A stretch of DNA of 64,000 bases. Origin: Octopus sinensis (taxonomy: Eukaryota). Positions 8,301 through 63,249 of this stretch are shown here, one piece after another (position 1 is the stretch's first letter; each line of letters starts with the position of its first letter). The DNA is taken from NCBI RefSeq assembly GCF_006345805.1, contig NC_043005.1, positions 93,620,001-93,684,000 of the forward strand, read 5' to 3'. Under the pieces are notes generated by a model, which was not told where the DNA came from, did not search any database, and saw nothing but the letters and a program-made list of their open reading frames with translations. Both the position numbers and the translations under genes were made by a program.

Positions 8301-8355
8301 ATAGTAAATTCCATTGTCTCGACCACGGTCGAACAATGATGATGATGATGAATGA
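5333..8355 (+). mobile_element. Near-full-length RTE-clade LINE (APE endonuclease + RT) with few disabling mutations
   Basis: TLNARTL, IIAVQEHR, VIAGDLNARLG, GSDHRIV (APE); NYRGISL, FVDFSKAFDS, GIL*GDTLAP, FADDI (RT); (ATG)n tail; 10-bp TSD TAGGTGACCA at 5323-5332 and 8356-8365; frameshifts near 5510 and 7130, TAG at 7440-7442. Confidence 0.95.
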
Positions 8356-37400: not shown

Positions 37401-40400
37401 GGGTTTCAGCCCAGCCACTGCCATGGCCAGGAGTTTCTGTAAATATAAAACCACAATGATTATTAATCTTGTTTCAAAGTTAGGCACAAGGCCAGCAATT
37501 TTGGACAAAGAATTAAAGAAATTCCACTATTTTGTCCAACAATTCTACCCACTCATTTCAATAAAATCCTCTTTTACCATGGTTCCTTACCCAAAGCATT
37601 CACTCTAATAACTCCTGTACAAGTCAACAAAATATGCACTAGATGTAACAAGGCATGTCAGTGTATCATATCCATATCTGGCTAAATGCATACATTTCAA
37701 ATAGCTGTACATCTAGTATTTTTCATACCGATATGCTTAAGATGAGATCCAATGAAGATTATGTTATAAGCAGATAATTGGGAACTAGCCTTTACAGCAC
37801 ATTGTCGCTAAATTTGACTTCTCCGATGAAGCAAAATAAATATGACCACCACATAATAAATCTGATCACCATTTTTTTTTATAAATGTGAATTTGTAACT
37901 AGTTTTAAATATTTAAGGCCTGTTTTCATTAACCACTAAATTATGAAGTGGAATCATTATCATCTAATCACTGAGAAAAGAGAGAGGAGATGGAGGGTAG
38001 ATAATAGAGAAAAAGAGATAATTACCCCTTTCTGTCTTTGGTGTCTCATCCCATCTATTTCTGCGAGCACTTGGTGTCGCCTGGTGTCCGGGAGTGTCCC
38101 TCCCAGGTGTAGCAGCACCAGGTGTGGCATGACCAGGAGTCGCTTCCCAAGCTCGAGTACTCGCACCAGGTGTGGCACTGGGTGTTTCTCCACCCTTACT
38201 ACGACCTGGGGTTTCGTCCCAGCGAGTGCTGGAAGGGGTATTTGCTGTAGCTTCTGCAGCATCCCAACTGGAACTTGATGTCTTCTTTGCTGGTGTGCTG
38301 TCATCTGTTGCTTGATCCCATCGCCGTCTCTTCACCGGTTGTTTCTGAGCCACAGCAGCTGCTGCCGCCGCCGCCGCTGCTGCTACAGATGCTGATGTAC
38401 TTGAAGAATCTCCTGACGAACCATTGACTGCATGCAACTCTCCTGATTTGGCCTTCTCTACCAGTTGTTGCCGTAAAGCAGCCTGGAAATAAAGAAATAA
38501 TTCTTATGATAATGGAGCTTATATAGAGAGGAGGAAGGGACAGACAAACACAGAGAGAGAGAGAGAGCTTTTGTGTGCAGCAGATGCACAGGAGCAATAA
38601 ACACGAAGATGTTCAGAAAACAGATTCCATCACCTGCCAGGAGGAGAAACTAGAAGTAGTTGATTGATTCCACTACCTAGGTGACCAAGTCTGTAGTGGG
38701 GGTGGATGCTCTGATAGTGTTGCCACTAGAATAAGAATAGCCTAGGCAAAGTTCAGAAAGCTCCTACCTCTGCTGGTAACAACGGGCCTCTCACTTAGAG
38801 TGAAAGGTAAACTGTATGATGCATGTGGGTGAACAGCCATGCTACATGGCAGTGAAACATGGACCATGACTACTGAGGACATACATAGGCTTGAAAGAAA
38901 TGAAGCTAGTATGATCTGCTGGATGTGTAATGTCAGTGTGTACACACAACAGTGTAAATACCCTGAGAGAAATGTTGGACATAAGATGTGGTGTGCAAGA
39001 GAGACGACTGCACTGGTATGGTCATGTGCTGCATATGGATGAGAAGAGCTGTGTGAAGAAATGTCACTCCCTAAGAGTGGAAGGAGCCCGTGGAAGAGGA
39101 AGACCCAGGAAGACATGGGATGAGGTGGTGAAGCATGACTTTCAAACGTTGAGCCTCACAGACGCAATGACAGGAGGCTGAAACCTTTGGAGATATGCTG
39201 TGATTGAGAAGACCCGACAAGCTAAGTGAGATCATAGCTGTAGCCTATACCAATGTTGCATAACCAGCCCATTTAAAAGTACCCTTGAATCATCTGGTGA
39301 TATGCTGCGCTTGAGAAGCCCTATGAAGTAAAATCAAAATCAAATCAAGATCTAAATCAAAATGGATATTTGTAGTTGAGGCCGATGCCAGTGCTGCCTG
39401 ACTGGCACCAGTGCTGGTGGCACGAAATAAGTACCATTTAAGCATGTGTTAATGCCAATGCTCCTTGACTGGCTCCACATGACAGTGGCACATAAAAAGC
39501 ACCAATCAAACGTGGTCAATGAATGTGGCTGTGGATTTCATGTCACAAATTAACTGATAATCATTAAACACTCCATCTCTGACCTTGCATCTAGCAACAT
39601 GAAGGTCATTGGTATTCCAAAGTCAAGTAATTGTTGGGGGTGTCATTGTTTTAATGTCAACTTTTCCATGCTTGGATGGATCAGAAGTGACTTTGGTGAG
39701 GCAGGATTCTTCAACAGCTCATCCTCTCACTAACCCTCACCTGCTTTCAAGCAAGGTAATATTTTCCTTGACTCATGCAACACCAAACAACCTGGACATA
39801 TTTTCCTGGAGGATTGTTAACAAATAATAATGATTGTAAAAAAAAAAAAGAGTTGCTGTTCCCAAATAGTGTACATATGTTGAGATAAGGGAATACACAC
39901 ACACACACACACAGATGGACTGCTTCCAGTTACCATCTACTGAATTTCACTCACAAGCTACAAGTCAACCCATGGCAATGGACATCAACCAACAGTATCC
40001 ATGCAGTGAAAGCTTCAAACCACATAGTTCCTGAATGAACTTCTTAACCACATAACTACATATTTTGTAAAAGCTGATGAGAGAAAGAAAAACCAAAGAA
40101 CATTGTTCTCTTAATGACATGCATCAATATCATGTGCAAGTTTAAGATTCTGCTCTTTATTGAAGGTTTATTATCAAAGAAGTGAAAAAAAAGGAGACAA
40201 AATAAGCATGAGATATGAAAGCCACAACCTACCTGTTGGTGTGTGAGTCGTTGTTCAACCATCACATCAGAGAAAGTTCGTTTGTTCAGTTTTGGATCAG
40301 GAGTTTTGCCGCCTGAAAAAGAAAGCAAACAAGGTCACGACAAGATGCCGTGACAAATAAATTCATGTGTAAGGAAATATGAAAACACCTGCATTGCAGT

Positions 40401-43400
40401 TATCATCTGAAGAACACCTCCAGAAACCATTCCAAGCATTAAATCAAGTCTTGCCCTTCCAACAATATACAGTATTACAATATTGGAAAAGTTTAGAGAA
40501 ACATAGCAATGAGGAAAAAAGACACAAGACAGAAAGCTTAGAACTAAAAAATTCCTTCGCTGTAGCTTTGAAAATAATTTTACTGAATTCTTTATCACAA
40601 ATCCTGAGATGCTATCCTTGTAAAATAATCAAATGAGCTACAAAAAAAACTACCTTAGACAAAAGAAAGAAGGATCTGCAAATAATTTACATGGTATAGA
40701 TACCAAGTTGGAACAAAATAGATCCTAAGAAAGAATTTCCAATGTTGCCCCTGTAAAACTCTGGCCTAAGTAAACAAACTTGAGCAGGGATTTTGATTAC
40801 ATTAAGTTTTATGAAGAAACATATTTAAAAGATAAGAAAGTTATTCTGGCTAGAGAGGTGAAGTAGTCAGTCTTGGAAGAAGAGAAGTATGCATTTGTGA
40901 CAAATAATTAGATAAGCAGGTCACTGTCGGTCCCACTGGAATGGAATCATTCAGTTAACTTCCCAGCAAATAGTGTGTTTGGTTGGTTGCCTGAGAGTTA
41001 GGACTCTAAAAGTGTCATCTTGGCAACAGTGAGAGAATAAATAGCTTGAAAGAACTCTAGCCTTGGTATTCAACCAAAACAAGGAAAGACTGACAGAAAA
41101 AAGTATAAATCATTGTTTATGGAGCAATTTTTAAGTAACAACATAATATATAAAACAAATTTTTAAATGTTTGAAACTGATTGCCACATAAGTGAATTCA
41201 ATATCATTAAATAGATCCACTTCTCATATTGGAAAGAGTCAATCTTGTTAAACTGAAATTAATTTTCAAACTTTATCAGTTTATTTAAGAAAATACCATA
41301 GATTGGCACCTCACTCTCTTGTATGAATTACATACCACAAACCTGAGGTAATTTGAAATGTAAAGAAGATAGATTATTGAGATTGAGATAATAACAGTTA
41401 TTGTTTAGCCAAAAGTAATTTCTGATTGAGTAGACTTATGATGAAAGGCATTCCAACAATGACCATCTAGTCTTTTTCCTATGGGTAGGAGATACAGAAC
41501 CCCATTATTCAATGTATCCTTTTCTAAGATGGTAGGGTGCTATTTCTAGCAGGCTGAGAACAAAACTGGGGGCATCTTCTTTGGCTCAATAGAAATACAG
41601 TAAAACAAGGAGACCATTGAACATTTTATAAAAACGTGGCAACTTGAACAATTATCTTTTCCTTTAGCCCCAGGCTGACCAATACCTCACGGTAGCATGA
41701 GGGAAAGAAGATGTAGAAACAATGTGTGTGTGTGTGTGTGAAATGTACACACTTTTTCATGGTTTCATTATTTTTTTGTCAGTATTTTTTTACCCCATGC
41801 TGACACAGGTTAGGAGAGATTATTGAGGCAGTATTCTCCACACACACACACAGACAGACAGATAGATAGATAGAGACCAAGTGCCCTCCAAAATACCTAT
41901 AATACTGCCATCAAACAGAAGTTAGTAGATTCCAAATAGGGTGAAAACAGAAATAAATATGACCAGTCTAAAGGATGATACAGAATACAGGATTTTAACA
42001 CCTGACCTTTGAGTTAGTTCTTAATACCTTAAATACTGTTTAATGTGATAAACAGACAGAGCCCAAAGTGTTCAAAGTGATCTGTATTTATAATGTTTGT
42101 CAACTGTCAACTAATTCTATTAAGACTGAATATGTTTAGTACTGTGGACTTGCAAAACGAAACTAAAAAAACCAGCAGATAAGTAAGGATTTTGGTCACC
42201 AAACAGAAAGCCATTATAGCAAAATGAAAAACTTATGAAAACTGTGTAAGAAAGAGTAAACTTTTTCAATAAGTAAACAAATCATTGGAAAGGAAAGACT
42301 GATTAGCAATGATGTGATGGTTTTGGAAGAAGTGGAATTAAAGCAAGCATTTCCTCAGAGGGGAGATCAAATTTCATTAAATGCTACAAAAGTAGTTTAG
42401 AATGGGAAAGTAAAAAGAAATGCTTGCTCATTTCCCAGCATAAAAAAAAAATACTGTCTTCCTTTTACTATCATACGTACAGTGCAGCTTCATGAGTTAG
42501 TGCCATCTTCTGTTCGTGTCTGCTTTCATAAACACCAACCCTAAAATTAGTCTCAGATTAGTGTAGTTCTAGAAACAGAACAAGGAGAGGGTTTAAAAAA
42601 AAAATGAAGAAAAGGTTCCAGATAATTCTTCTTTTCCACCAATTCACAGCATGGAACAGCCTTGGCAAAAAAATTATCAAATATAATTTTTGTTTCTTAT
42701 TTACTTCCTCTCACCCCAAAACATAGAAATGTTGAGTAAGTTCAAAACTATATACATCTAGCATACGTGTACATCTTCTCTCTTAAATAAAATGAGAATA
42801 TCTTATAGAATTTTGCTTTTCCTACTACATGATGCTACAGAGAAACCAGATTGCATGTTTGTTGCAAAACTAGTTTGGGGGAATCATATCTTAAATATAA
42901 TTTTAGGAACTGCTAATTGCTATCAGAATAGGAAGTTTGAACAATCATCTCTCTTTCTACAACTTGGCTTGGAGAATAAATTTCTAATCTAAAGAGAACC
43001 AAAAAACACTGATTCTATCAAACTGATGCTAATTTCAGATTTTATGAAGTTTTCCTTTGCACCAGGTGAGAAAAACAAAATTACATATAGAAAATAATTT
43101 TGCTACTAATTTCATACACAGACTGCAGGCATGATTATGTGGTTAAAAAGTTTGTGTGCCAACCACCTGGTCTGAAGTTCAATCCTATTGGGTAACACCT
43201 TAGACAAGTGTCTTCTATCATAACCTTGGGATTGATTTGGTAGACAGAAACTGGAAGAAGCTCATCATATATGTGTATATATGCATGCACACACATACAG
43301 TTTGTATGTATGCATGCATAACTATGTGTGTATGCATGTTTCTACACTTTTCTGAAAATTCTCTCAGCCAGAGAGAGTGACTTTGCTGCCATTTCCTCTA

Positions 43401-43598
43401 TCAACAGGTCATCCACTGGTTTTGTGCCTTCGTAGATAATATAGGATATCCCCCACCACCAAAAAAAAGGTAAGGGGAAGCAACAAGAAGGGTATCCAGT
43501 TGCATAACAATGCTTTCTTGATACATTTGTCTAACCCAATGACAGCAGGAAAAATGAACGCAAAAACAAATGAATGAAAATATATATATGTATATATA

Positions 43599-43635
<37 letters not shown>

Positions 43636-43636
43636 G

Positions 43637-43667
<31 letters not shown>

Positions 43668-46600
43668 TACACATACACACATCCTATATACAGGGTGCAA
43701 ATGATATCCATTCACAGCTTTCAGCTGCTAATTTTGCACCAATTCTTTTTACTTTTATTGTTAGCCTATTTTTCTTAAAAACAAGAACCATTTTTGCTTT
43801 ATTTTTTTTTTTGCAGAATAACTAACATGTGGCTCACTGTCTCACCCAGAATCATGCAGATGGAATTTCCAGCAACAATTATGATCTTTGATGTCATCAG
43901 CAATGGTGACGTCATGCTACCCCACTTCTTCCCAAGAAACTCAGGCCAACAAACACCAATGACTACATTCATGTTCTGAGCAAGGTGGTAAAGCCCTAGA
44001 TCAAGTGGGAAGCTGCAGGGAGGTCATATGTGTGACAACAAGACACTGCACCCTGCTACACCAGCTGGAAGATCCAGGCCTAGCTGTCAAAGAATTTCTT
44101 TGATTACACAGCATCTCATATTTGGCCTCCCAACATACCTTACTGCAACCCTCTTGACTTCTTTGTGTGGGTCATGGTGGAATGAGAAGCCAACACATCC
44201 AGCTGCAACATGAAGAACAAGCTGAGGGCCAGGATTACCAGGGCCTTCAGGGATCTAAAACAGGAGAAAGTGACAAAAAATCTGTGGCTGGTTCCAAGGC
44301 TGCCTGGAAACTGTCATCGAGGCTAAAGGTGGTTTCGTCAAATGAGATCGACAGAACATGTCTTCATGACAAACTGAACTAAATTTGACTAATATATCTC
44401 AAATATTATAAATACTTATTTCTGTCCTGGGACAGCCATCATGCAAATGAATACTATCTACACCCTGTACAGACATATATATATAAATGTCTTGAACATT
44501 TGGAGGTTGATACCAAGGAAAAGACTCAAAGGCTTATTTTATGGACAAACTTCTATGATTATATATACACATAATGTATATGTATAATGAAAATTGATGT
44601 ACTGCTACAAAAAGAAGAACTATATTTTATGGAATTAAAAACAAAAATTTCTCTTTTTTTTACCTTCTTTCAATGAAAGTAATTCACTTAAGATGATATG
44701 TTCAAAGAAAGGGCTGACAAAATTATAGAAAGTAAATCACTGAACTTTCATTTTAGCCAAAAAAAAAGGTTTAAGTAAAAAATTGTAAACTGACAAATCT
44801 AATTGACAGAGATCAATGGTGACAGCAATAGTGAGGCATCACCAGAAGTGTTTGGGACTGTTAATTACACTGGTAATTCAAGTAGTTGGTAAGCACTCAG
44901 CCTTTCTATAGCAACATGTAGTAGACACTAAATAAGATGTGAATTACACTACAATTGTTATGTATCCTATATTGGTGAATTGTTGTGTTTCTTATTTTAT
45001 CATGGATCAGGTTAATTAACTTTTTTTTTAAATCACCTAGTTTTTGCATTAAAAAAATTAAATTAAATTAAATTTGCAAAATCCAATCTTAATATTAAAG
45101 GTTTGACAACAACAACAATGCAGAAGGAAGGGCACCGAGGTGAAAGCACCTCACATGATAGATGTCGATCAGGCACCAACGGCAGCAAGGCATTCCAGTA
45201 GCTAGAAAGGAAAGATACATTTAATTAGTACCCAGATTTTTTAAGTTGTACATCAGTTAGTGGCACTAGTGCCACAACACTGAAGGAGTAGCAGTACTGT
45301 CTACTTCATGCAGTCTTTTTAACAGCAGCATGTAAAACACAGCAGGTGATACACATTTGCAGTTGTCTCTTGAAACAGATTCTTAACTTCAAGTAGCTTT
45401 AATGATGGAGCCCTGATTAGTGTTCTATTTAGTAAATTGAGATAGAATTTTTTTTTTCCATTTTAGCTATAAAAGATTAGGCTTTTTTTTCTTCTCCTTC
45501 ACCAATGTTTTAAGAACAGAACATCAACCAATAAAACAAATATTTTTGAGATATTCTGGAAGAAAATCTATTGATACTTTAAAAATGATTTATAACCACA
45601 GATCCTTTTGAACTTTTTCATTAAGGCTCCATAAATATTCTCAGAAATCTAGAAAATTTCATAGAGCCATACAGAACCAAACAATTATCAATAAGATACC
45701 TTAAAATATCCATCTAACAAATAGTGACCAAATTTGAATGTAAAACCTGAAATTTCCAAACAAGTCATCAGACCTGTCTATAATTAATATCCCCTATTAT
45801 CACCTTTCTTCATACCTTCCCCCCACCACCACCACTATGTCATTCAATATTGTTATCTGTCACTCTTTTTCTCAGCATCACCAGTCTTATATCTCTTTTA
45901 CAATACTTGCTCCTCTATCACTCCTAAAACTCCTTCCTCCTCCACAAGCTAAATTATTATTCTCTCTTCCTCATTCCCAATACTTCCCCATCATGCACCC
46001 ACTTGCTCTGGTTCTCCCTGTATCATCACTCACTCTTCTATTCACTCCCTCAATCACATTTGGAGATATCTTAAAGTAAAAGCTCTGTACAGGGTTACCA
46101 GATTGGGCTAAGTAACATAATGCTACTTTTCTGGACTTCATGCTTCTATTATTTTTAATTTGGGTTACTAGCTCAAGTAAAATCATAATTTTGAAAGGTA
46201 AAAATCCAAATGAATATCATATTAAATTATCAAGTAAATTAGAACTGAACTGCAGACAATCTTTGTATATGCATGTATGTGTGAGTGTGTATGTTTGTGC
46301 GTATACCATTCAAACACATTCTAATTTACTAAAAAAATTTTCGTTTTGGAATACTTTCCAACATAATCTGCAACTATCTGGAGAAATTTGTTCTACATTT
46401 TATGTAATTAATCTGGCAACCCTGATTTTGCAGGAGACTTGATAATTATAACCAGTAAACTATGAGCAGTGGTTGGCAAATGAATGGACACAACACGTGG
46501 TTGAGAGGAAGCTTTGGTCTTTTTAAGGCCATGTTAACCTCTTTTGCATTGATGCCATGATAAAATGTACCAGGACATTCTGTAAAGTGGCTGGTACCCA

Positions 46601-49100
46601 AGAGAAGCCATGCCAAAATTGGAACATGTCTCAGATGTTAGTAATTCTAAATAAGAACTGACATGGACCAAGATAACAAACCCAATTGTTGAAGAGGTGG
46701 AGGAGGACAAAATTTACAAGTAAAGTAAAATATTTTTTTTACAACAGTGGATAGTAACAAGATTGAATTTTCATGATTGACATCAATCCCAAAATTGAAA
46801 CATCAAAGGATGTAATAATAAGACTAAACAGAGATGGATCACACTTCTCTAGAACTTTAAAAACCTGCTCAGCACTAACAAGAAATGTGATAAAATAAAT
46901 CTAAATGACAAACATATGAAAACAAGTTGTATGCACAAGTGTACAAATGAAATTAAATAGACATGCCAGTATTCAGCTTCCAACAAAGGAAGTTTTATTT
47001 ACAGCTTTATTTTGAACGTGATAAGGAAAATACTAAAGAACACAAATGTATGAATTCTTGTAATTAAAGATAATTCTCTTTCTGCTTACAAATAAAATTA
47101 TCTAGAGATAGGGAAGTCAACAGGTATGACCCTAGTATTTTATTAACAAATAGGATTAACCGATGTAAGAACAAAAGCAAAATAAAATAAAAGCTAAGCG
47201 AAATGGAAAGTATCAAACCAGATACACGAAATGATACAGTCCAGTATCTTACCATTTCAACCAACTCATCTACTCTAATATTAAACATGATATTAAGTAG
47301 ACTGCTGGATGGAGTTATAAACCCACTGGTCACAAAACACTTGCATTCTTCTAGCTTTCAAAGGATGCCACACACACTCACTAAGCAGGTAGGGGACATA
47401 TTCCCCCGGAACAATATATGAGTGTGTTGCAGATGAGTGAAGTATTTCACTCGAGAACACAATGTACGGCTGGTCTGAGAATTGAAACTACAACCTCGCA
47501 ACCATGAGTGAAACCACCAAGCCATGTGCCTTTACAATATTAATCATAATATAAGATAAAAAGGTACAAAGTCTAGTCTTGCAATGCAACAACATATTTA
47601 ATATTAATGCATAAAGAGGAAAGAGAGGAATTGGAGCAAACAGCAAACATAATAAAATATCTACAAGTGCTGCTTATGTTTTCAATCATTAACGGCCTTT
47701 GATACGACTATAACTAACTTTGATATTATAACAGATGAAGAAAATTCAAAGAACTAATTAACAAGCCACAGACATAAAACATATTAATTTATACAAGGCA
47801 AAAGTTGACAGAGACTTCAAAGCACTGGCTTATTTGATATAACCAGGCACTCACAAATGTGGAAGGAAGTAAATGACAACACCTTGAGAAGACCAATTAC
47901 TAATTCAAATACCTCTCTGCAACCGCAGAAAAACTTCATCAGAGCTTGCTGCAAATTTCAATGAAGCCTGCACATTAAAAATATCACCAACAACAGCAAA
48001 AAGATTTCAAGAGCACAGTCTCAAAGACTGTTAAGCAAGGAAGAAACTTTGAATTTCTCAAGTGAGCCAAACATTTTTGGCTCCAGTGAGCCAAAAATCA
48101 TAAAAACTGGAATCTTACACAGTGGTCAAATGTCATCTGGTCAGATGAAAGCAATTATCAGGTTTATAAACTGAGCTATACTCGTTTTTTTTTTCTAATC
48201 CTGACTTGCAATGAATGATGTTCTAAAGGCGAAGTTTAAATCATTTTATCCAGATTTTCAATACACCTGGCACAACTTATGTGACGAGAAGAGTTGGAGA
48301 GACCTATAATCCTGATTGTGTGGTGCCAACAGTGAAGCACAGTGATGGTTCCGTCATGGTATAGGGATGTATGTTCTCAGCAAGGACAGGAAAGATTTTT
48401 TGTGTGATGGAAGAATGAACTCCACAACCTACACTGCCATGCTGGATCAAGTTTTGGAGCCATTTACTCATCAATTGCTTCCAAATACACCTAAAAAGGA
48501 AGTATCATTCCAAGACAATGCACCTTACCATACTTCTCGCCAAACAAAAAAATTGGTTCCAAGAAGAAGGCTTTACTCCATTGGAGTTGTTATCCCTGAC
48601 CTAAATCCTATTTAACATCTTTGGAAGGTGCTTAGGAAGGCAATTAGAAGCAGCACAATTATTTGAAACTAGAAGAGTATCACAACCTCATATTATCCAT
48701 GCCACGATGAATCAAGGCAGTCATAAAAGCCAAATCTGATACACTAAGTATCAGATTACTGAAAAATAAAATAAATCATTTTTATACTTTTATTGTCCTA
48801 ATTTAACCATATACCTTAAACGTAATTAATTTTGATGGATGCTTTATACTTCTGGCCAAGGCAGTATGTATATCACCATCATATATACACACACACAAAT
48901 TTTATATATGTGCACACACACACACACACATATATATATACATATGCACTTTAGCAGTGTAACCACATGTGCCATTGGCAAATGAAGAGCTATGCTCGAA
49001 ACATCAAACTCTCTCCTTTCACCAAGTGTTGACCGTTTTTATTCATTTATTTGAATTGTTTGTTTATTTGGACTATATATATATATATATATAACACCAC

Positions 49101-49164
<64 letters not shown>

Positions 49165-50269
49165 TATACATATATATACACACATATACATATCATCATT
49201 TAATATCTGTATTCCATGCTAGGATGGACTGGACAGTTTGATAGAAGCTGCCCAGGTGAAAGGCTGTTCAGGCTCCATGTCTGTTTTGGCATAGTTTCTA
49301 CAGCTAGATGCCTTTCCTAACACCAACCACTTAACAGGGTGTGGACTGGGTGCTTTTATGCAGCACTGGTACAGGTGCTTTTTACATGGCACCAGCATTT
49401 ACAAGCCCACAAGATTAAGGATGCTCCACTAGAAGAGAGTTGCAAGGGATGAGACTGTATATATACATACATATATACCTACGCATACATACATACATAC
49501 ATACATATATATATATACACACACACACACACATACATTGAAGACAACGTACGAGCGTTCAGCTTTTGCCAAACAACCAGCACAAATTATTTATTTTTTA
49601 GTGACCAAATGTTCGTGCCACACATTAGCTCACTCCCTCCATCAAATCAAGGTGGCCTGAACACAAGCACAGGTGTACCACACGCCAGGTGGCATAGTGA
49701 TCACATTATGAGAGTGTTTTGCTCAAGAACACAATGCACCCCAGTCTAGGAACTGAAATCACAATCTAGCAATCATGAGTGCAACACCCTAACCACAAAG
49801 CCATACACCCTTACGTATATACATACACGAATACATATATATACATACATACATATGTACATCCGCATGTGTGTATGTATGTGTATATATACAAATATAT
49901 ATGTGTACGTGTGTGTATGTGTGTGTATTTATCAAGGAAAGCGGACGTTAAACGACGATGATGATGATGATGATATATATATATACATATAATCAGCCCA
50001 TTTAAGAGTACCCTTCAATCACTGGACCATAAACTGTGCTTGAGAAGACCCGTTGAATCAAGTGAAATCATTGTCATGGCCAGTACTGCCTGACTGGCAC
50101 ATAAAAAGCACCCACTACACTGTTGGAGTGGTTGGTGTCAGGAAGGGCATCCACCTGTAGAAACCTTGCCTGATCAGATTGAAGCCTGGTGCAGCTTTCT
50201 GGCTTACCAGTCCTCAGTCAAACCCTCCAACCCATGCCAACATGGAAAGTGGATGTTACACGATGATGA

Positions 50270-50306
<37 letters not shown>

Positions 50307-50948
50307 CACACACACATATACACAAACACACACCTATGAGAGAGCTTTTGTCCATATATCATATTTTTGAAAACTTTGAAAAAGTCGCAGCATAGTGTGG
50401 TCAACATTATTAAAATGAAAAATAAGGAAATTAACAAACTTTGATAGAATATCATATTTTCTGGAGAGAAGCTGACAGAAAGGCCTATTTGACTGCTGAT
50501 TGATAAAGAAAACATATTTTTCTACTTTTATGGTTTTATGAAAGCTCAACCAAAAATTAACACAAAGGAAATAATTACTTATAGAAGATGAAAGGAATGG
50601 ACATTTGCTATTCTTCACATATGGATGCAAAAATATCAAATTTCTGTCATGGCATGAAGTCTTAGATTTTCTAAAAAGGGAAATACAGAATTCCGACATT
50701 CGTAACCAATCTAATCATAAAGGAAAGCTCATACTGATAGATGAGGCAATAGTGTACAAGTAAAATATTAAAAAAGACCAGAGAAACATCTTCCAACAAG
50801 AAAAGAAGACAAATATATAAATAAAACAAAGAAAAACTTTTGTAAATATTTTTTGAATTATTTTGATTTCAGTTGGGCTCGTAACCAGCTAAAACTTAAA
50901 CTTAACATGTTGATGACCATGTGGGGCTAAACTGAATGAGGATTTCAA

Positions 50949-50995
<47 letters not shown>

Positions 50996-53900
50996 TATAG
51001 GTATGTATGCATATAAACCTGCTAACAAAATAAACAAACAGCCTCTTATTTGACTTTTTTGAGGGGTTTTTCTTTTTTTTGCTTGTTTGGAGGTTTTTTT
51101 TCTTTTGTTTTTTGGTGGAACTAAAATAGATGTATCTTATGATTCAGAAAATTCTCAAAATTGCTAAAACAATTTTAACTGGAATTTCAAGCCAACAACA
51201 ATTTTCTATTTATGGTTCAACTGATTCAATATTGGACTACTTCATGATCCTTGGAACCTAAAATGGAAAATATACAGATATATATTTATAAACTCACATA
51301 TGTATGTATTAATCTTACACATACACAGAATGTTTCTTAAATCTCTCGATAAATATTTAATAAAATACAGATCAGGATTGATGTTTTCCTAGAAAATTGC
51401 AATCAGCAAAGGAAAAGTAATCTTCAAGAAAAGGACCCCGCCTTTATAATTACATTTCTGGAAAAAAAAACCTTCTTTATTGTCTTTTCTAAAGACCGAC
51501 ATACAACAAATTGAGTGAATGCTATGAGACTTTAGGCAAATTTCTTAATTAATTAATAAGATTTTTAAATGCTTTTAAACACAAAAATAAGAGAAAAGTT
51601 TGTGCTTAAAAGTAACTAATGTATAAGTTTGTAAAACCCCTTCAAAACCGGATAAAGAATATAGTAATAAAAAAAATTGGGCAACAAATGAAAAAACTGT
51701 AAAAAATTTTTTTAATTTATAATTTTTCAAAAGAAATGACAAACCTTCAGCAAAAGGATCATATCTTTCAGGGGAAATAATCATCTGCCTACGAATAGCT
51801 CGATAGTCATCTTCTCTGTCAGCAATTCGGGCTGGCCGGTTATCAGCAAGAGGATCGTAATTCTGAAATATCAACAAAAAAAAAAATTTACAAGGAGGAA
51901 AAAGAAAGAAAAGAAAAAACTTTTATTATGCACGGTTTCCATCCTCATCGTTTTAATATGCATTTTTCGCCAAACCAAGTGAAATCATAGTTCAAGCCAG
52001 TGCATATAACACTAGAAAGATACCCACTACACTCTTGGAGTGGTTCGCATTAGGAAGGGCATCCAGCTGCAGAAACCAAGCTAAGCCAGACTGGAGTCTG
52101 GTACAGTTCTCCAGCTTACCAGTTCCAGACAAACCGCGTAACCCATGCCAGCACAGAAAATGGAGAGAATTTGCTGAGGTAGATTTTTCTACAATTGGAT
52201 GCCCCACCTGTCACTAACTTTCACTAGTTTCTAAGCAAGGTAATTAACAGGTGTTCAATCCTGGCTAGGTTTCACACAAATCAGCCAAATGTTTTGTTTA
52301 CCAATTTCTATATCAGACCAAATACTTGTTGGCTTAGCTCAGAACATCAGGAATATTTATCACCGAGGAGCCCAAACCAGGTTGGAACATCATGTCTGAC
52401 AATCAACCAGCATTCTGAGCAAATCCAGGAGCTTTTTTAACACAGAAGTCTCTTTGAGAAGTTTTTTTCTATGCAACAAAATATTACATGATACCATTCC
52501 ACATTTGTATAGACATTACGTTATATACAGAGCAATATATTTTAATCTAAGGCTGCTTCAAGTGCATGTATTAATTTTTAAAGAGTTCTGTTAATTGCAA
52601 TGTTTCCTTATTTGCTATGTTTACAAAAATCTATGGCTTACTGCCCTAAATAATAGCTATTCAAATCATACTGACAATTAACATGTAGAGTGTCTTGCTA
52701 AATAGTTAAAAAGGTCATAATGTTAAAAGGATTAAAGAGTTTTTTTTCTGTCTTCAACCATCACCTCTTTCAAAGTCCTCACTCCGTTATCTTGGACTAC
52801 ATCCAAAAATAATGACCACCCAACTAACTGGCATGGGGTTACTCATAAATAGATGAATATACAATTGAGGTATTGTTTTACAGTAAGATGCCCTTCCCAT
52901 AATTAATCCTTGCCTGCTTTTTAAGTAAGGGATTTCTTATTCCCCAAAGTGTCAAAGGTACAAAGGGAGCAGATGATTTGTTGACAAGAAAACTGACAAC
53001 ACCTCGCACCCATGTACAGCAACTTTCATACAGCAAGACATAGACAAACATACACACCTAATGGTCTTTTTCAGTTTCTGTCTACCAAGTCCTCTTTCAA
53101 GGCTTTGCTCAGCCTAGGGTTATAGTAGCAGACACTTGCTTAAGGTAGACTATGGCAAAACTGAACCTGAAGCCACATGGTTGGAAAGCAAACTTTTTAA
53201 GCACATAGCCCTACCTGAACCTATATCCTATATCTAACATGGTGTTTTGGGCATTTGGCAATAAACAACCTACTTAGTGAATATGAACAATATTTCTATG
53301 ATAATGCTCATATGCATGTATGCACATTATCACAGGCTAACATAGGTGAGTGAGATTGCTCTGCAATTAGGATCTATAAAGTGAATTGGTACAACAAGTA
53401 ACTTTACTGAATACAATTTAACTACATCAAGTCCTGGGTATGATTTGAAGCTGCATTTGGTAGTGGGGCCCTTGTTTGGGAGTTCTAGGGTTTTGAAGAG
53501 TATAGAACCACCTTTTAGCTACCATTGTTTGCAGGTCTACTCTGACCCAGAGTAATAACACCTGTCAGGGTCCCAACTACAGGTTAATTAGCTCCAGAAT
53601 AAGATCACTCACAGACATCCCAATGGATGCAGGGTAGCTAAAAATAAAAATCAAAACATAAGAACACAGACATGAAATGTACATCTTACCTTGTCATTTA
53701 ATGTGTCATTCAATAAATTCAATGGTGCGGTGAATGATGATTTCTTAGAATAAGATGGCTCCTCTTCCTCGTCCTATAAAGACAAAAACATATATTGTTT
53801 GTTTAACCATGAAGAAAGCTGCAGCGACAATCATCTACATCATCAAGAATGGAATGAGAGAAATAGCCAAGTCAATAAACAAAATAAGTGGTACCTCAGC

Positions 53901-54576: not shown

Positions 54577-56318
54577 CTGCAATGAATAGTGATAAATAAG
54601 GTTTAACAAAACTGACAACTATACCCTTTACATTTACTTTTCAACAAGGTTTACTAATACAGAATCTGACACAGGCACTTAACATCATTTATTATTCCAC
54701 TTTTCTATGCTAGCACACACACTGGACAAGTTGTTGTTATCCAGTTACTGTCTTCTTTGGTAGTTTCATCACTTCTCACTCCTATCTTCCAGTTTGGACA
54801 ATTTCCTATTACCAACCACTTAACTGAATAAAGTGGGTTCACTTTATTATGGCACCAGCACTAGAAATTGGCTTGCTACTCAGCAAGATTAAAGAGATAT
54901 CTTTATTCTCATTTCCATTCATTCACTGGAAGCTGTGAAATTGTCTCACTCCAAGGGACACCCCCCCACTGTTCTTTCAGTTATAACCATTCCTTCATTC
55001 ATTTCTTTCATTTCCATACTACTGAATGAGATGAGATCCAGAGTAATAGAGTTATAAAAGAGAAAGAAGGTGATAGATAAATATAGATATGTGTATTTGT
55101 GTGTATATTTAAATCTTACATATGTCTGCATATGTATGTATCTATGTATATCCATCTGTGTATTTGGATGTATATGTATATTGATGGTTTAGTATGCATA
55201 TATACTGTTGTAACATATTTATGTTATGCAGCATGAAAATTTTAATTTTAATTTTTTAATGTATTAATTGTATTAATCGAATTATATTTCATATATAATT
55301 ATTTGCAATACGTATTTTGAATCCGTTCTTCGATTTAAGGTTTTTCCTTGATTTTTATAATAGGATGAATTTATATTGAATTCATTTATTTTGTTCATTG
55401 CATGCTCAAGACTGCTAATGGAAAGGACCGATGAAACAAATCCATTTTTAAAGGTGTATCCTTTAACTAGTTTTGATCATATCAGTATTTCTGTTCTATT
55501 TTAACAAATCTGTCCAACAAACGGGAACATGAAACTCTGAGTAACAGCTTTTGTTATATTTGTGCTGCTTTTAAATAAAGGATATCACTCTACCTCTGGT
55601 ATTACTCTTCTTTTCCACCTTGTTTCACATTTATGTGCTTACTCCAGTGTGCATATGTATGTATGTGTGTGTATATATATATATATATATTATATATATA
55701 CACACACATACATAGACATACATATACACATACATATGACTATGTAACCTACAGCTTCTGTACCTCTAACCGTTTGTCAAGTTTATCCCTCTACTTAAAC
55801 TGCAGTTATGCCACTAGGTATCTGTAACCAACAAAAGATTGCATGTTTGTAAATGTATTTGTGTGCCATGTATTTGGTGTCAATCAACTACAAAAACCTT
55901 CACCATCTTTACCATAATCCTATCACTGCTTGTCAATTTCAATATTCCTCTGTTGACTTGTCACATGAATTTTATAAACTTCTGCAAAAATGTGAATTCT
56001 TTTTTGGAACATTGGTTCTTGAAACACATAAAGCTGTAAATAATAGCATGTAAACATTGGGTCAAGAAATAGCTTTTCAATAGAAAAATCTGAAGGCAGC
56101 CCTCAAATCTTTCTAATCAAAAGGGTTTTACAACTCGGTATTTCTCTTGACTGGAGAAATCAACCACCTAACATTTATATTGTTTATTATTATACAGAGA
56201 TTAGTTTGAACATTTAATAATTTCATGTCCAGCTTCTCACTTACAAAAATAGATTTTGGCAATATTCTTGATGGTCTTTCTTACTAAACTCTATAAACTG
56301 TTGTATTTATTTAAAATA

Positions 56319-56981
56319 TTAGGTTGTCAAGAAAGTTCTTGCAGAATTTATAATTTTGGTTTTATTTTCGTTAAATTACTTTGACTTTATCATTTTAAAG
56401 CCCGTTTTTCGCTCTATCTAATCATGTTACTCTTTTTCTTTTTGAATAATTAGGCCATTTTTCCAGAACATTGGACAAAAAGCACAATTTTCTTATTCCA
56501 GTTCAAGCTAGGCCGAAAAGCTGCTAGGCGAAACCATTACGGCGGAGAAGTACTGTCAACATATGGATGAAATACATAAGAAACTCCAACAACAACAGCC
56601 AAAAGGACCAATTCTTCTCCGCGATAATGCTCAGCTGCACGCCGCACAACTGACCCTGCAGAAGTTGAACGAATCGGGCTACAAAACTCTGCCTCATCCG
56701 CCATACTCACCTACCTATTACCACTTTTTCAAGCATCTCGATAACTTCCTGTGTGAGAAATGTTTCAAGAACAAAGACGATGCCAAACACACCTTCAACG
56801 ACTTCATCGCCACCAGACCGCAGCATTTTTATGCTACTGGCATAAATAAACTTGTTTCATGTTGGCAAAAGTGTGTTGATTCTGATGTTGTTTATTTCGA
56901 TTAATAAAGTTTTGTTTGCGCCGAGATATGTGCATCTGAATTTAAAGGTTAAAAACTGCAAGAACTTTCTTGACAACCTAA
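56319..56981 (+). mobile_element. Internally deleted mariner element (Hsmar1/cecropia-like)
   Basis: TIR TTAGGTTGTCAAGAAAGTTCTTGCAG at both ends, TA TSD; LL.DNA..H...HPPYSP.YYHFFKHLDNFL...GINKLVS.WQKCVDS.G/V.YFD. Confidence 0.92.
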
Positions 56982-57384
56982 TAGAAGTAGAACCAGACAT
57001 AGTAGCTGTGTTTAATAACAGGGAATTTATCAAAATGGAACTGATCTAATCTACAAATCTATAAATGGAATTGTTGCAGTTATATCAAATGACCATAAGA
57101 AATAGTTCATGAAGAAGTATACAAAAAAAAATCTGACAACCCTGTAGATAGCAAAAGAAGTAACCCCTCCACCAAAACCCCACCCGCCTTATATTGCATC
57201 ACTAACTTAGTACTTAAATGTAAACCAACAGCTGTAGAATGTGTGACTTTTAATCTCAATTTATGTTACCAAGGTTGACTTTCATTTGTTTATGGTCAAT
57301 AAAATATAAGTGAGATCATGAGTTAAATAGTTAAAAAGCAAAACTATATTTAGCAAACCGAAACAAAGTATATATCATGTAGGC

Positions 57385-57716
57385 ATAGGAGTGGCTGTGT
57401 GGTAAGTAGCTTGCTTACAAACCACATGGTTCCGGGTTCAGTCCCACTGTGTGGCATCTTGGGCCGACCAAAGCTTTGTGAGTGGATTTGGTAGATGGAA
57501 ACTGAAAGTCCATTGTACATATATATATATATGTATGCATGTTTGTGTGTCTGTGCTTGATCCCCCCCCCCAACATTGCTTGACAAAAGAGACTGATAGA
57601 ATAAGTACTAGGCTTACAAAGAATAAGTCCTGGGGTTGATTTGCTTGACTCAAGGCGGTGCTCCAGCATGGCCACAGTCAAATGACAAACAAGTAAAGGA
57701 GTAAAGAGAGTATTCA
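57385..57716 (+). mobile_element. Full-length tRNA-derived SINE with CR1-like 3' tail
   Basis: ggagtggctgtgtggtaag...ggttcagtcc head; tail ggtgctccagcatggccacag...aaacaagtaaa. Confidence 0.85.
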
Positions 57717-58339
57717 ATCATGTACCATCTCACACAGACAAACACAAAAACCATGTAGTTATGAAATCAATTAAACGACTTTGTACTTGGTCCTTTAGAG
57801 CAAGGCTTATAGCCTACGATTTAGAGGACAAAGCAACAAATCAGACCTTTTAAAATTAAGACAGCAATATATTCCACTATATATAAGGCAATCACAAAAA
57901 TAGTTATTAAAAAATTCTACTAGAGAAAAAAACCTATATAGTGTTATTTCCAAGAAATGCCATTTTATTAAATTTTAAACCAAAGGGAATGTAGTTTTCT
58001 ATTTTGATCTCTCTCATATAGCATCTAATATGACATTTAAATTTTCTTTTTTTTTTTTTTTTTTGAAATGTCAAAAGCCCACAAACTGATTTGCAGCACA
58101 TTTCAAGAACAAGAATTTTCATTTAGCATAAAGTTTTCTTTTTATTAAGAACTATTACAACTAACATGTGTAATAGATATACAAACAAACATAAGCATAT
58201 ATGTAATAGGTATAGGTAGGAGTGTGTGGTTAAGAAGCATCAGTTTTATTGACCTCTGGGTCAATAAAAGCCTTGTGAGTGAATTTGATAAATGGAAACT
58301 GTGTGGAAGCTCAAGGTGTGTGGTGTGTGTGTCAGCAAG

Positions 58340-59535
58340 CCCTTGCAAGACCCCTGCAGCTTCTTTTTTCAGAGCTTCCTTGCAAGTGGTAAGCTCCCAA
58401 GCAAACTGAAGAAGGGAATAATTTGCCCCTTTCATAAAGGGGGAAGCAGAGTAGATGCTAAAAACTGTAGGCCTATCTCTTTGACCTCACACATCAGCAA
58501 ACTCCTGGAACGAATAGTCCCAAGGAAACAAACTGCATTCCTTAAAATGAATGACTTGCTGACTGCCTGACACAGCTCTTGCAACATTACGACTGGGTGT
58601 TCAAGCAGCTGCTCAACAACTCAAATGTGGATGTGATGTACCTCGACTTTGCAAAAGCCTTTGATAAAGTTGACCATGGTATGATATGCCATTAGCTGTA
58701 TAATCTCAGCATAGTCAGAAAAACTTGGAGCATGGCTATCCTAGAAGATAGAAGTCAGGTAGTGGTGGGCCAACGAGACTACCTCCTAGGAAATGCAAAT
58801 AATGAGTGATATCCCAGAAGGCACTGTTTTGGAGCCACTGCTATTCATAGAGGCCCTTTCAGACATGCCCTCAGCTGCTCAGATAACTACCTTCGCTAGC
58901 TATGCAGAAGATGGAAAAGTCTCTGAGGATACAGAACCTTGGAGATGTACACTGCAAATTGGTCTACTGCTCCCAACTATGGTCCCTACAGATGTGTGTA
59001 ACACATCTGAAGCAATCCAGTACCAATTCACAAAGAAGATTGACTCAATGCAAAAGATGGGCTACTGAGAGAGGCTAATGGAGCTCAGTCTCTATTCCCT
59101 GGAGAGAAGATGAGAGAGATATGCGGTGATATATATTTGGAAGATCGTGGAGGGTTCAGCTCACAATATTTGGAATTAACTGTTATACCAATCCTTGAAC
59201 TGGACAGTACTGCATCATATCAAAGACACCATCTTCCCCCACCTAAAATAAGGACACAGTACAGCAATAGTCTTGTTTTCAAGGACCCGCAATTGTTCAA
59301 CATCATTACAGGTAACCTTGGATATCTATATGATGTTGATGTGGAAGTTTTCAAGGAACATCTGGACAGATTCATGTCTGAGATGCCAGATGAAACCACA
59401 TCAAGGCAGAAGACACAAAGTAGAGCAGCTCTGTCCAACTCGCTACTTCACCAAAAACGATATTGGAAACAATACCAAGTAACTACAGATACTGCACCAG
59501 CAGGACCTCAGCTCTGGGCTGAAACAAGTAAAAGA
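58340..59535 (+). mobile_element. Decayed CR1 LINE (RT to 3' end)
   Basis: HKGGSR.DAKNCRPISLTSHISKLLE, YLDFAKAFDKVDHG, PEGTVL.PLLF; tail ctgaaacaagtaaaaga. Confidence 0.85.
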
Positions 59536-59654
59536 TATATATATATAAATAAAAACTTACTTGGAGAAGAGAAAACAACGCGTGCGTTCAGTCATATAAT
59601 AACAATTTAATAAATAAAACATAAGCATATATACATACATATATGTACATACCT

Positions 59655-62150
59655 AGTTAGTTAGTTAGTTAGTTAATTTATGGCTCAAAAAGCAAAAAGC
59701 AAGGCCATGGAGTTATGTGGTGTTCATGTAAAGAGTTCAGGCCATTTCTGAGCAGTTGTCGGCATCTTCACCATCTCATCCGGCAGCTTATTCCAAGGAT
59801 CCGCAACCCGGACGGAGAAAGCCCCTCTCCTTCGATTAAGATGAAATCGTCGCAGATAGAGCTTTTCGGAGTGACTCCACAGCCGACGCCCTGGAGCAGG
59901 AGTGAAGAACAGCTCTTTCGAGAGGTTACACTTTCCGCTTATGATGTTGTGAGCAAGAATGAAATCACCACGGTGTCGTCGTTTTTCTAGAGAATAAAGG
60001 TCGAGCGTCTTCAGCCTTTCTTCATAAGACAAATTCTTGAGACCAAGAACCATGCGGGTAGCCAGCTTCTGGACTCTTTCGAGATGTTGTATGTCTTTGA
60101 GGAGATAAGGAGAAGAGGCTTGAATCCCGTACTCCAATATGGGTCTCACCAGCGTGACATAAAGCGGTAGGAATATGGCCGCTGTGAGCATTCCGAATGA
60201 CCGTCGAATGAAGAACAGAACTCTACGTGCTTTGTTGGCAGCATGGATACCCAGGTCCTTTACCTGGTTGGTCCTCTCCAGCAACAGACGACCCAGCTCG
60301 AAATCAAGTTGAGTTGCAGGAGGAGAGCCAACAGGCAGACGACAGCACTTTGACACGTTCAGACACAGGTCCCATTCGTTAGACCATCTCCAAATTTGGT
60401 GGAGGCATCAACGAAGATCCTCTATATCACCACGAGGAGCGACCAGTTTGACATCGTCGGCAAATAGAAGGGTGTGTTGCGTGAGGTCGTCGAGCAAGTC
60501 ATTTATAAAGACTAAGAACAATAAGGGCCCAAGCACTGAACCTTGAGGCACGCCACTGCTCGCACTGGAGACGTCGGACAGCGAACCATTAACTTGGACT
60601 TGGAAGGAGCGATCTGAGCGGAAGGCACCAACCCATCGTACAATATCCGGATGAAAACTATATGCTTGAAGCTTGACAAGTAATAGGTGGTGGTTTACCA
60701 AGTCAAAAGCTTTGGCAAAGTCCAATAAAACGATGTCAACAGCATCACCATCATCGAGGATGCGCGTCACCAATTCTTCCATTACCAGTAAGTTGGTCAA
60801 GCATGATCTCTTCGGCACGAAGCTGTGTTGGGAATCAGAGATAGAGGCTGTGTTTTGGAGGTGGAGCATCATACTTTTCTTAAGGATGGTTTCGAACATC
60901 TTGCTGATTATTGAAGTAAGGGAAACCGGTTGGTAGTTAAGTGGGTCTTCACGGCTCCCTTTCTTGCAAATTGGGCAGATTATCGCTGTTCTCCAGTCCG
61001 CAGGTATAACACCCGTCGCCAATGACATATTGAATAGACGTGTTAAAGGCTCGCAGATGACCAGAACTAACGCTTTGATAACCCATGTATGCTGTCAGGG
61101 CCGTGACCCTTGTTGACATCGAGGCCTTGAATAACGCGTTCTACTTCGTTCCGCGTGATGACCAATCGAAGCATTGGAGGTACCGATCTATCAAATAGAG
61201 GGGGTTCACGACCATCATCTTGTTTGAAAATAGTTGAAAAAGCCTCAGCAAATAATTGACTGTTGATAAGGGTCCTCAATCGATACGCCTGTTGAGTCTA
61301 CCAACGTTGCAATTTGGTTGTTCAAGCAGGAATTCCGTTGGACATGGGCAAAGAAGGTTTTTGGATTGCGACTGGCGTTTGCCGCAATTCTGTATTCATA
61401 TCTGTAGCGTTCTTCCTTTTCAATTTTCACGGCTCGGTCTCGTTGAGTTTTGTACACCTCAAAAGCTGCAGTCGAATCTAGATTTTTGAATTCAGCCCAA
61501 GCAATATCTCTGAGTATCTGAAGAGGGCATAGACCTGTAGGTGGATTTCCGAGTCCTTTACTGCTGGAGTCAGCCAAGTCTCAGTGATATCTATCACATC
61601 AGGGGAATAACGCATGGCCAGTGTAAATAGTTCGCTGAACTTTGGAAAAAAGGAGCATGAGTTGGTATAGACGATGCTGAGCTGTGAAGTTTGAGGGGCA
61701 GGAATTGGGGAACAAGCAGAATAAGGGGTATCAGAGATAGCATCGTTGTCGGGGGTATCTACTTTACTTCGATTTGCCCTCGATTCACTTTCCCTGTCAG
61801 CACTACAGCATGCGACCTGAGGTAGGACTTGATTATTTGTCCATTTGGGATGCATAAACCTTTATCACCCATCTGTTTTCTCATCTTCAGTTCGGATATT
61901 AAGTTTCTCCGGCGAATTCTCTCTCTCAGTGAGTATTCCTCACAAAAACCCATATTGGGGTCCTCCCAGGCATGCATCTGAGCTCTGTTCAGAAAGGTTG
62001 AAGCCTCCTGATCGGAAGAAAAGATTACATCTATATGTATATATACATCCATATATGAGTACAGGACACCACAAATAAACGTAGAACACAACGAGAAACG
62101 AAAACATAAAATCAAACGAAAAAACAGAGTACAGGACAAACAATACAAGG
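59655..62150 (-). mobile_element. CR1 LINE with ORF1 end, APE start and RT, internally deleted; (TAAC)n tail
   Basis: VYTNSCS...ITETWL (APE); NYQPVSLTS, LDFAKAFD, GVPQGSVLGPLLF, LFADDVKL (RT); PILEY...LERVQKLATR, YEERL..LDLYSLEKRR.RGD. Confidence 0.92.
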
Positions 62151-62329
62151 AAAACTCTCCTTCATCAGCTGCCCCTGGTTCGACTCAATGCGTATATATA
62201 TATATATATACATACATATATACCTACATACATTCATATATACATGTGTGTATATATATATATATACACACATATATATATATATATACATACCTACATA
62301 AGTATACATATACATACATTATATATATT

Positions 62330-62786
62330 ATCATCATCATCGTCGTTTAACGTCTGCTTTCCATGCTAGCATGGGTTGGACGGTTTGACTGTGGGCTGGC
62401 GAACCAGATGGCTGCACTAAGCCCCAGTCTTGATCTGGCAGAGTTTCTACTGCTGGATGCCCTTCCTGACGCCAACCACTCTGAGAATGTAGTGGGTGCT
62501 TTTACGTGCCACCGACACGGGGCCAGTCCGGCGGTACTGGCAATGATCACGCTTAGATGGTGCTCTTAGCACCCTACTAGCATGGGACACAAGTGCCAGT
62601 AAGGCGAGGCTGGCAACAATCACGCTCGTATGGTGCTCATGCCGGTCATCAAATTTCACTTTGATTTTGATTTCGGTTTCAATTTCACTTGCCTCAGCAG
62701 GTCTTCGCAAGCAGAGATTAGTGTTCAAAGAAGGAAAAGATACGCACAAGTGGGCTGGTTACACCCCTGGCACAGGCAAACGAGGT
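62330..62786 (-). mobile_element. RTE 3' UTR
   Basis: Family tail and body. Confidence 0.85.
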
Positions 62787-63245
<459 letters not shown>

Positions 63246-63249
63246 TTAT

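Follow-up and report, generated by a model that had tools for sequence, protein, structure and literature searches.

Conserved cryptic splice sites and an acceptor-proximal hairpin in intron 4 of octopus SF3B1 suggest an invertebrate form of the vertebrate decoy-exon system

SF3B1 is the branch-point-reading core of the U2 small nuclear ribonucleoprotein (snRNP) and a major cancer gene; human cells adjust its expression by a decoy-exon-dependent retention of intron 4. In a 64,000-nt stretch of the Octopus sinensis genome (NC_043005.1; hereafter the window, with positions counted from its first letter), SF3B1 was located on the minus strand from ~54576 down to 19303 by tblastn, using a human SF3B1 sequence as the probe. 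The gene model comprised 20 exons (exons 2-21) with canonical splice sites and a product of 1,350 residues without stops. Here we describe intron 4 of this gene and three short blocks within it: two cryptic 3' splice sites, named B and A in the order of transcription, and a hairpin, C, beside the acceptor of exon 5. An earlier note on the same DNA had proposed a poison or decoy exon beginning at B. Exon 4 ended at 51745 (...GATCCTTTTGCTGAAG^gtttgt, with splice junctions marked by a caret; the exon end is also given as CCTTTTGCTGAAG) and exon 5 began at 40312 (tttttcag^GCGGCAAAACTCC), so that intron 4 occupies 40313-51744. It splits DPFAE^GGKTP, and no longer intron lies wholly within the window. 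Its position and phase match those of the camel (and so the human) intron at DPFAD^GGKTP, which bears out the orthology to human intron 4 stated in the earlier note. The limits and phase that the note gave for this intron, and its rank as the longest fully contained one, were also confirmed.

51745..51862, minus strand: SF3B1 exon 4, encoding a 39-residue stretch and the G of a split Gly codon; donor AAG^GTTTGT
40313..51744, minus strand: intron 4, 11,432 nt, phase 1, orthologous to vertebrate SF3B1 intron 4
40233..40312, minus strand: SF3B1 exon 5, encoding a 27-residue stretch

For comparison we used intron 4 sequences from Solemya velum (L001, 4.6 kb), an ENA assembly contig (L002), a JGI metagenome contig (L007) that holds a complete intron 4 of 1,277 nt, Capitella teleta (L047) and two further ENA contigs (L049 and L050). 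Solemya velum, a bivalve, also gave the top N-terminal SF3B1 match in the protein collection (74%), a search that returned no cephalopod and no full-length (>1,200 aa) SF3B1. When the Solemya intron was compared with that of the window by blastn, the only noteworthy matches were three colinear ones on the sense strand: A (window 42578-42538, 36/41 identical, E=3e-6), B (45229-45191, 80%, E=0.02), which covers the branch point, pyrimidine tract and AG that had been flagged, and C (40355-40313), which is the end of the intron. An unbiased scan of the whole window intron in sliding 40-nt segments against the Solemya, L002 and L007 introns gave summed local scores with a mean of 33.2 (standard deviation 4.2), and, microsatellites apart, only three blocks stood out as outliers, A with a score of 68, C with 55 and B with 50 (z=4.0), making B the third most conserved non-repeat block in 11.4 kb. 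As like-for-like controls we scored the 42 pyrimidine-rich AGs of the intron, and the cross-species score of B topped them. Long microsatellites of the (TA)n/(CA)n type lie at 43580-43690, 48866-49360, 50272-50340, 50949-51015, 55650-55740 and 62190-63260; four of these six are in intron 4 and create spurious cross-species conservation scores unless masked.

Profile searches, in which each profile was built without its target species, recovered A in L002 (E=0.0022), in L007 (E=0.0013, the sole significant match in 39 metagenome loci amounting to 330 kb), in Capitella (E=0.013) and in L049 (E=3.5e-4). The B profile had its top match at B in L002 (E=0.058) and, colinear with the other blocks, in L007, and it found B in L049 with E=2.4e-8. 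C was recovered in Capitella (E=3.5e-5) and L049 (E=0.026), and as an exact pattern match in L050. Against the remaining 52 kb of the window the profiles gave nothing better than E=0.6. Written as a pattern (ACTAAT-N6-20-TTYYYTTTSTAGC), B had a single occurrence in the 64-kb window (45229-45201; 0.00 expected). Among 48 loci searched with this pattern it was found in L001, L002 and L007 only, always on the sense strand; L049, a further locus, contains it as well. An exact-pattern scan for A in JGI metagenomes gave 0 matches, and a Logan contig (L046, 78% exon-4 identity) that ends 1.56 kb into the intron showed no clear B or A. The sequences taken from two other loci, L003 and L004, stop short of intron 4. 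The alignments finally covered seven species for A and six for B, the B of L050 being a diverged form recognized by eye only.

The sense-strand order exon 4 - B - A - C - exon 5 was constant in every species, including the 1,277-nt intron of L007. The conserved parts were exactly the branch point, pyrimidine tract, AG and donor, together with the hairpin; exon bodies varied. By the scan, the independent profile matches and the alignments, all three blocks were conserved above the intronic background; the earlier note had looked to conservation around its flagged site, and the 3' splice site there stood out in this way in Solemya velum, L002, L007 and L049. It is very likely that B is a selectively maintained element. 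An Rfam scan of the whole window and a tRNA scan gave no match, so the conserved blocks are not a known hosted RNA.

45189..45234, minus strand: element B, 3' splice site with TACTAAT, tract TATCTTTCCTTTCT and AG; kept in five species
45037..45201, minus strand: candidate exon body after B, 165-nt version; donor TAG^GTGATT, stop TAA at 45097-45095
47 nt, minus strand: alternative B exon ending at 45155; donor CAT^GTGAGG
52 nt, minus strand: alternative B exon ending at 45150; donor GAG^GTGCTT

B has its branch point, TACTAAT, at positions 45230-45224. The branch A stands 23 nt away from the G of its AG (45203-45202), and atctttcctttctag^CTACTGG follows the branch point, the first exon base being 45201; read as one piece, the minus strand from 45230 to 45202 is TACTAATtaaatgtatctttcctttctAG, continuing into CTACTGG. 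No second copy of this stretch was found in the window. A splice from exon 4 to 45201 would add a 35-residue tail before TAA at 45097-45095, and TAG^GTGATT sets a candidate GT donor at 45036-45035. What the earlier note had read here, namely the TACTAAT, its 23-nt distance from the AG, the non-repetitive surroundings, the premature stop and the GT at 45036, was all found in the sequence as described. The 47-nt and 52-nt exons are equally possible as the 165-nt version, and every version yields a premature stop.

Splice-site strength was assessed with position weight matrices (PWMs) derived from 19 donors and 20 acceptors of SF3B1 itself. The B acceptor reached 9.6 bits (rank 4/605 among the AGs of intron 4), and its candidate donors were mediocre, at 5.9 bits for 45037 (rank 24/755) and 4.8 bits for 45155 (rank 42). 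Dinucleotide-shuffled versions of intron 4 contained a mean of 2.5 acceptors as strong as B and a mean of 1.7 acceptor-donor pairs of B quality (donor within 25-300 nt; P(≥1)=0.84), the antisense strand and other introns hold pairs comparable to those of B, and AT-rich sequence can be expected to run into a stop within 35 codons. We therefore rejected splice-site strength as evidence for B, since shuffled introns do equally well. The top combined score in the intron belonged to a 50-nt pseudo-exon on the minus strand at 44713-44664 (acceptor 8.9 bits, donor AAG^GTAAAA 9.2 bits); it was dropped for want of cross-species conservation, a case in which score alone misleads.

Across species B takes the form (CC)GAG/GGT-ACTAAT, 10-11 nt, (TC)TTTCC(C)TTTCTAG^C. 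Because this conservation ends ~10 nt past the AG and no donor is common to the species, the 165-nt exon, its donor and its peptide are without comparative support, and it is unlikely that the exact exon 45201-45037 is real. The earlier proposal of a decoy exon was thus right about the intron, the kind of element and a conserved acceptor, and its exon limits, with the donor at 45036 and the 35-residue peptide, did not hold up. B, being without a conserved donor, may not define an exon at all.

42538..42576, minus strand: element A, 3' splice site AGAACTACACTAATCTGAGACTAATTTTAG^GG, AG at 42542-42541; most conserved block of the intron
42562-42557 and 42551-42546, minus strand: two ACTAAT branch-point motifs of A
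42481..42540, minus strand: cryptic exon A (if the GTACGTAT donor is used), 60 nt, in-frame TAA at 42499-42497
42473..42480, minus strand: exon A donor GTACGTAT, a rare 8-mer
42468, minus strand: alternative A donor A^GTAAAA

The main conserved cryptic exon of the intron was not the flagged one but A (42576-42473), which the earlier note had missed, as it had the hairpin at 40354-40334. Unlike B, of which only the acceptor is conserved, A has the makings of a short non-coding cassette, with a conserved AG and a conserved GTACGTAT donor 51-73 nt downstream. This 8-mer occurs twice in the window, both strands counted together (0.5 expected), and forms the A donor at the same relative place in L002, L007 and L049; variants were GTACGTAG in Solemya and GTACGTTG in L050, and the Capitella unit has a consensus GTAAGA donor after 57 nt. 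The body of A (51-73 nt across species) is not conserved in sequence and carries in-frame stops, which were read by eye in the frames of Solemya, L002 and Capitella. In the window, exon 4 joined to A would encode a 19-residue stretch before TAA at 42499-42497, and all six inclusion scenarios for B and/or A end in premature stops. The A acceptor has a short U-run only and a PWM score of -2.8 bits (rank 187/605). Intron 4 contains nine consensus ACTAAY motifs in all, two of them at A and one at B; of the 20 constitutive acceptors of the gene, 1 has such a motif within 60 nt upstream. A reading of A as a 29-nt AG..GT micro-exon was rejected, as L002 lacks both flanks.

40334..40354, minus strand: element C, hairpin GTCACGGC-ATCTT-GTCGTGAC, -12.3 kcal/mol; kept in seven species

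Element C ends 21 nt before the AG of the exon 5 acceptor, adjoining the upstream side of its pyrimidine tract. Its 8-bp stem was found in six other invertebrate loci, including Capitella teleta, and was absent from the camel, fish and mayfly introns. Predicted folding energies in five species ranged from -10.8 to -13.3 kcal/mol. The arms are invariant among the mollusc-like sequences, with a loop of 3-6 nt (8 nt in Capitella), and one stem pair is A-U in Solemya, L007, L049 and L050, G.U in the window and L002, and G-C in Capitella. Both this stem-pair pattern and the changing distance between the arms speak for an RNA hairpin rather than a palindromic DNA site.

In human late erythroblasts, approximately half of SF3B1 transcripts retain intron 4, which measures 1.8 kb; six cryptic exons have been predicted in it (E4a-E4f, 29-56 nt), and almost all of them add stops (Parra et al. 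2018, PMC6097662). Two of them, E4d and E4e, are fish-conserved decoys that promote intron-4 retention; the human decoy exons bind U2AF and splice inefficiently, their deletion abolishes retention and their splice sites are essential (PMC6097662). A morpholino against the E4e donor lowered retention from ~26% to ~3%, and the decoys have been described as conserved 'from fish to mammals' (Parra et al. 2020, PMC7373989). Our full-text literature search returned no paper linking SF3B1 decoy exons with invertebrates.

Three vertebrate loci, from camel (L005), a darter fish (L045) and a second mammal (L009), were set beside the invertebrate ones. Camel and darter share only two conserved blocks in intron 4 (camel 741-855 and 1432-1559), which are E4d and E4e according to the statement in PMC6097662. 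The second camel block reads gttACTAATggtaaagagataattttctag^GCTTCTATTCTGCTGCTTGA..., and exon 4 joined to it encodes G-F-Y-S-A-A-stop, which confirms the ending GFYSAA given in the earlier note; the human decoy exons of which the note speaks are confirmed by the two papers (PMC6097662, PMC7373989). Both vertebrate blocks carry consensus ACTAAY branch points, and their order, E4d-E4e, is that of B-A in the same host intron, which agrees in position and phase. At E4e the donor follows the AG by 56 nt and is again GTACGTAT (camel L005 9671, L009 9369, fish L045 5392); its occurrence at matching spacing was noticed post hoc and is suggestive.

The invertebrate set resembles the vertebrate decoys E4a-E4f in lying in the same gene and the same phase 1 intron after DPFA[DE], in comprising several short cryptic cassettes that would bring premature stops, in combining weak or AT-rich acceptors with consensus ACUAAY branch points, and in having two ancient units whose order agrees (E4d before E4e, B before A). 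E4e and A have in common the rare donor GTACGTAT and, in most species, a spacing of ~51-60 nt. The invertebrate set differs in that its exon bodies can vary freely, those of vertebrates being ultraconserved, in that no significant alignment joins the units of the two groups, in having at the exon 5 acceptor a hairpin that vertebrates and the mayfly lack, and in a B without conserved donor; function, moreover, has been tested in human cells alone.

Direct comparison of vertebrate with invertebrate units by blastn found nothing. Of the vertebrate profiles, that of E4d had its top match at element B of L007 with E=1.1, and that of E4e missed A; in Smith-Waterman alignments with shuffled controls the best matches did not fall on E4d or E4e. 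A profile that included the mayfly placed the fish E4e acceptor as top match in the vertebrate introns, with E=0.07. The mayfly itself, Ephemera danica (L048 1630-2040), keeps intron 4 at the same position. By eye its intron holds a unit like A or E4e, cattaatcacccagataatttctag^G (also read gataatttctag^G), of 72 nt with the donor cac^GTATGT, and a B-like acceptor, tgTACTAATg...tttttcttcccttctgag^G; profile searches of the mayfly intron were not significant. The architecture and the shared GTACGTAT donor favour an ancient rather than a convergent origin, and common descent of A and E4e is plausible, with the chances perhaps evenly balanced; the case for B and E4d is weaker. There is a realistic chance that the intron-4 system is of bilaterian-ancient origin. 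That the whole system predates the protostome-deuterostome split, with A and B as orthologues of E4e and E4d kept for >550 million years, a sensor of U2/SF3B1 activity made up of UACUAAY consensus branch points and a GUACGUAU donor that binds U1 yet splices poorly, and a hairpin added in spiralians to handicap the exon 5 acceptor, is possible but doubtful.

We consider the B-A-C set most likely to be an invertebrate addition to the known SF3B1 intron-4 decoy/poison-exon system, with a new accessory hairpin, and from its sequence it probably works as such a decoy or poison system. Its most likely function is the one that experiments have established for the vertebrate intron-4 decoys. The cryptic sites of B and A would recruit U2AF/U2 snRNP and U1, and could then pair unproductively with the exon 4 donor and the exon 5 acceptor, leaving intron 4 retained. 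Alternatively, B or A might be spliced in, which would bring a premature stop and nonsense-mediated decay. Retention and inclusion alike would leave less productive SF3B1 mRNA. With consensus branch points at B and A as against 1/20 constitutive acceptors, recognition may depend on U2/SF3B1 activity, which would provide negative feedback. The A donor GUACGUAU would pair with U1 from +1 to +8, the C at +4 being the one exception, and lacks any exonic match, so that it could keep U1 bound yet splice poorly. Hairpin C, placed by the exon 5 pyrimidine tract, might make the authentic acceptor easier to out-compete, handicapped or timed. A 152-aa invertebrate protein of metatranscriptome type (P0001) has exons 1-4 joined and a frame that runs into intron-like sequence after DPFA-x-G. 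Because its relatives P0006 and P0010 have an intron before exon 4, P0001 may be an intron-4-retaining transcript.

Several results weigh against such a decoy system. B was not detected in Capitella, where part of intron 4 and exon 4 are assembly gaps, and its phylogenetic depth is anchored by Solemya alone, four of the comparison loci being metagenome or assembly contigs. The splice-site strength of the B pairings is unremarkable next to shuffles, B is without a conserved donor, and the splice sites of A are poor (acceptor -2.8 bits, donors ≤1.7 bits). A query of exons 3-4 with the predicted B tail found no protein with that tail in the protein collection, from which this species is absent. 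The covariation in C amounts to a single pair, judged by eye in a gapless alignment of the arms, and the tests of homology between vertebrate and invertebrate units were not significant.

Comparable systems are known in other genes. The decoys of OGT intron 4, SNRNP70 intron 7 and ARGLU1 and the ultraconserved poison exons of SR-protein genes are likewise conserved non-coding intronic cassettes in splicing or regulatory genes, whose inclusion or retention is unproductive and serves homeostatic control (PMC6097662, PMC7373989, PMC12017769). Those cases concern other genes and are backed by RNA and functional evidence, whereas the present set is known from sequence; here, in addition, the host gene encodes the branch-point-reading U2 snRNP subunit and the decoys carry consensus branch points.

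The conserved sites and hairpin might instead help intron 4 to be removed accurately and productively, be it by stepwise or nested splicing, by drawing a distant branch point nearer to the exon 5 acceptor, or as an intronic enhancer scaffold. The elements do carry splice-site grammar, the hairpin lies between candidate upstream branch points and the exon 5 tract and could cut the effective distance, and the window intron is long (11.4 kb), yet all three elements are kept in the 1,277-nt L007 intron, where length needs no help, and the vertebrate counterparts inhibit intron removal (PMC6097662, PMC7373989). Like B and A, recursive splice sites and RS-exons present a conserved 3' splice site deep in a long intron; B and A differ from them in lacking a juxtaposed AG^GT and in persisting in a 1.3-kb intron. 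Neither B (AG^CT) nor A (AG^GG) rebuilds a 5' splice site, and zero-length recursive splicing is therefore excluded. Overall, we regard a helping role as unlikely.

Alternatively, A or B could serve as a terminal or cassette exon for a functional truncated N-terminal SF3B1, comparable to the short human isoform that is annotated with the ending GFYSAA. A transcript joining exon 4 to A or B would indeed give short tails after DPFAE, just as the vertebrate E4e junction gives GFYSAA and a stop. Such a product appears quite improbable, as the tails are wholly different between species and the exon bodies unconserved, no AATAAA lies within ~200 nt downstream of A or B, and it is the splice signals that are conserved and not the coding frame. 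A regulatory role at the DNA level, in which the blocks would be intronic enhancers or transcription-factor sites and only resemble splice signals, is very improbable. Conserved intronic blocks of 20-45 nt are typical of enhancers and the C arms form a DNA palindrome, but a sense-strand RNA grammar has been kept (ACTAAT at the proper distance, pyrimidine tract, AG, and GT 51-73 nt later), the 3-8 nt spacing of the C arms suits an RNA hairpin better than a dimeric DNA site, and one stem position changes between A-U, G.U and G-C. A chance pseudo-exon without function at the flagged site is hardly credible, for although shuffles, the antisense strand and other introns match its strength and the best-scoring pseudo-exon (44713-44664) is not conserved, B has been kept in five species in a colinear arrangement with A and C, and its motif is unique in the window; for the B 3' splice site chance is thus largely refuted, and for the 165-nt exon body and donor it stands.

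Elsewhere in the gene, exon 1 (MAKIAKTHE-like) was not found upstream of exon 2 in the window (54577-64000), so that intron 1 is longer than ~9.4 kb or extends past the window edge. The GC-rich sequence at 63300-64000 resembles a dispersed repeat and not a promoter. Remnants of non-LTR retrotransposons were present at 5702-8339 (plus strand), 59724-61028 (minus strand) and 27882-28340 (plus strand), with open reading frames (ORFs) matching the Pfam families Exo_endo_phos_2 (endonuclease-reverse transcriptase) and RVT_1; one remnant lies upstream of exon 2, probably in intron 1. A short ORF without match was seen in the intron between the exon ending at 29234 and the exon starting at 27283. In exons 6-7 (38482-38026 and 37436-36976, minus strand) the N-terminal TP-repeat region contains a 10-residue alanine run in comparison with human, and a run of (G)MTPG-like repeats in this region is expanded relative to human.

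Taken together, conservation of B, A and C in one order within one intron suggests that the decoy control described for human SF3B1 intron 4 may also exist in molluscs and annelids. If so, this would be one of the oldest known examples of a core spliceosome gene regulated through unproductive splicing. The 1.3-kb intron of L007 would then represent a minimal natural version of the system, in which the branch point, the AG and the GUACGUAU donor matter and the exon body does not, and the acceptor-proximal hairpin would be a new component of it.

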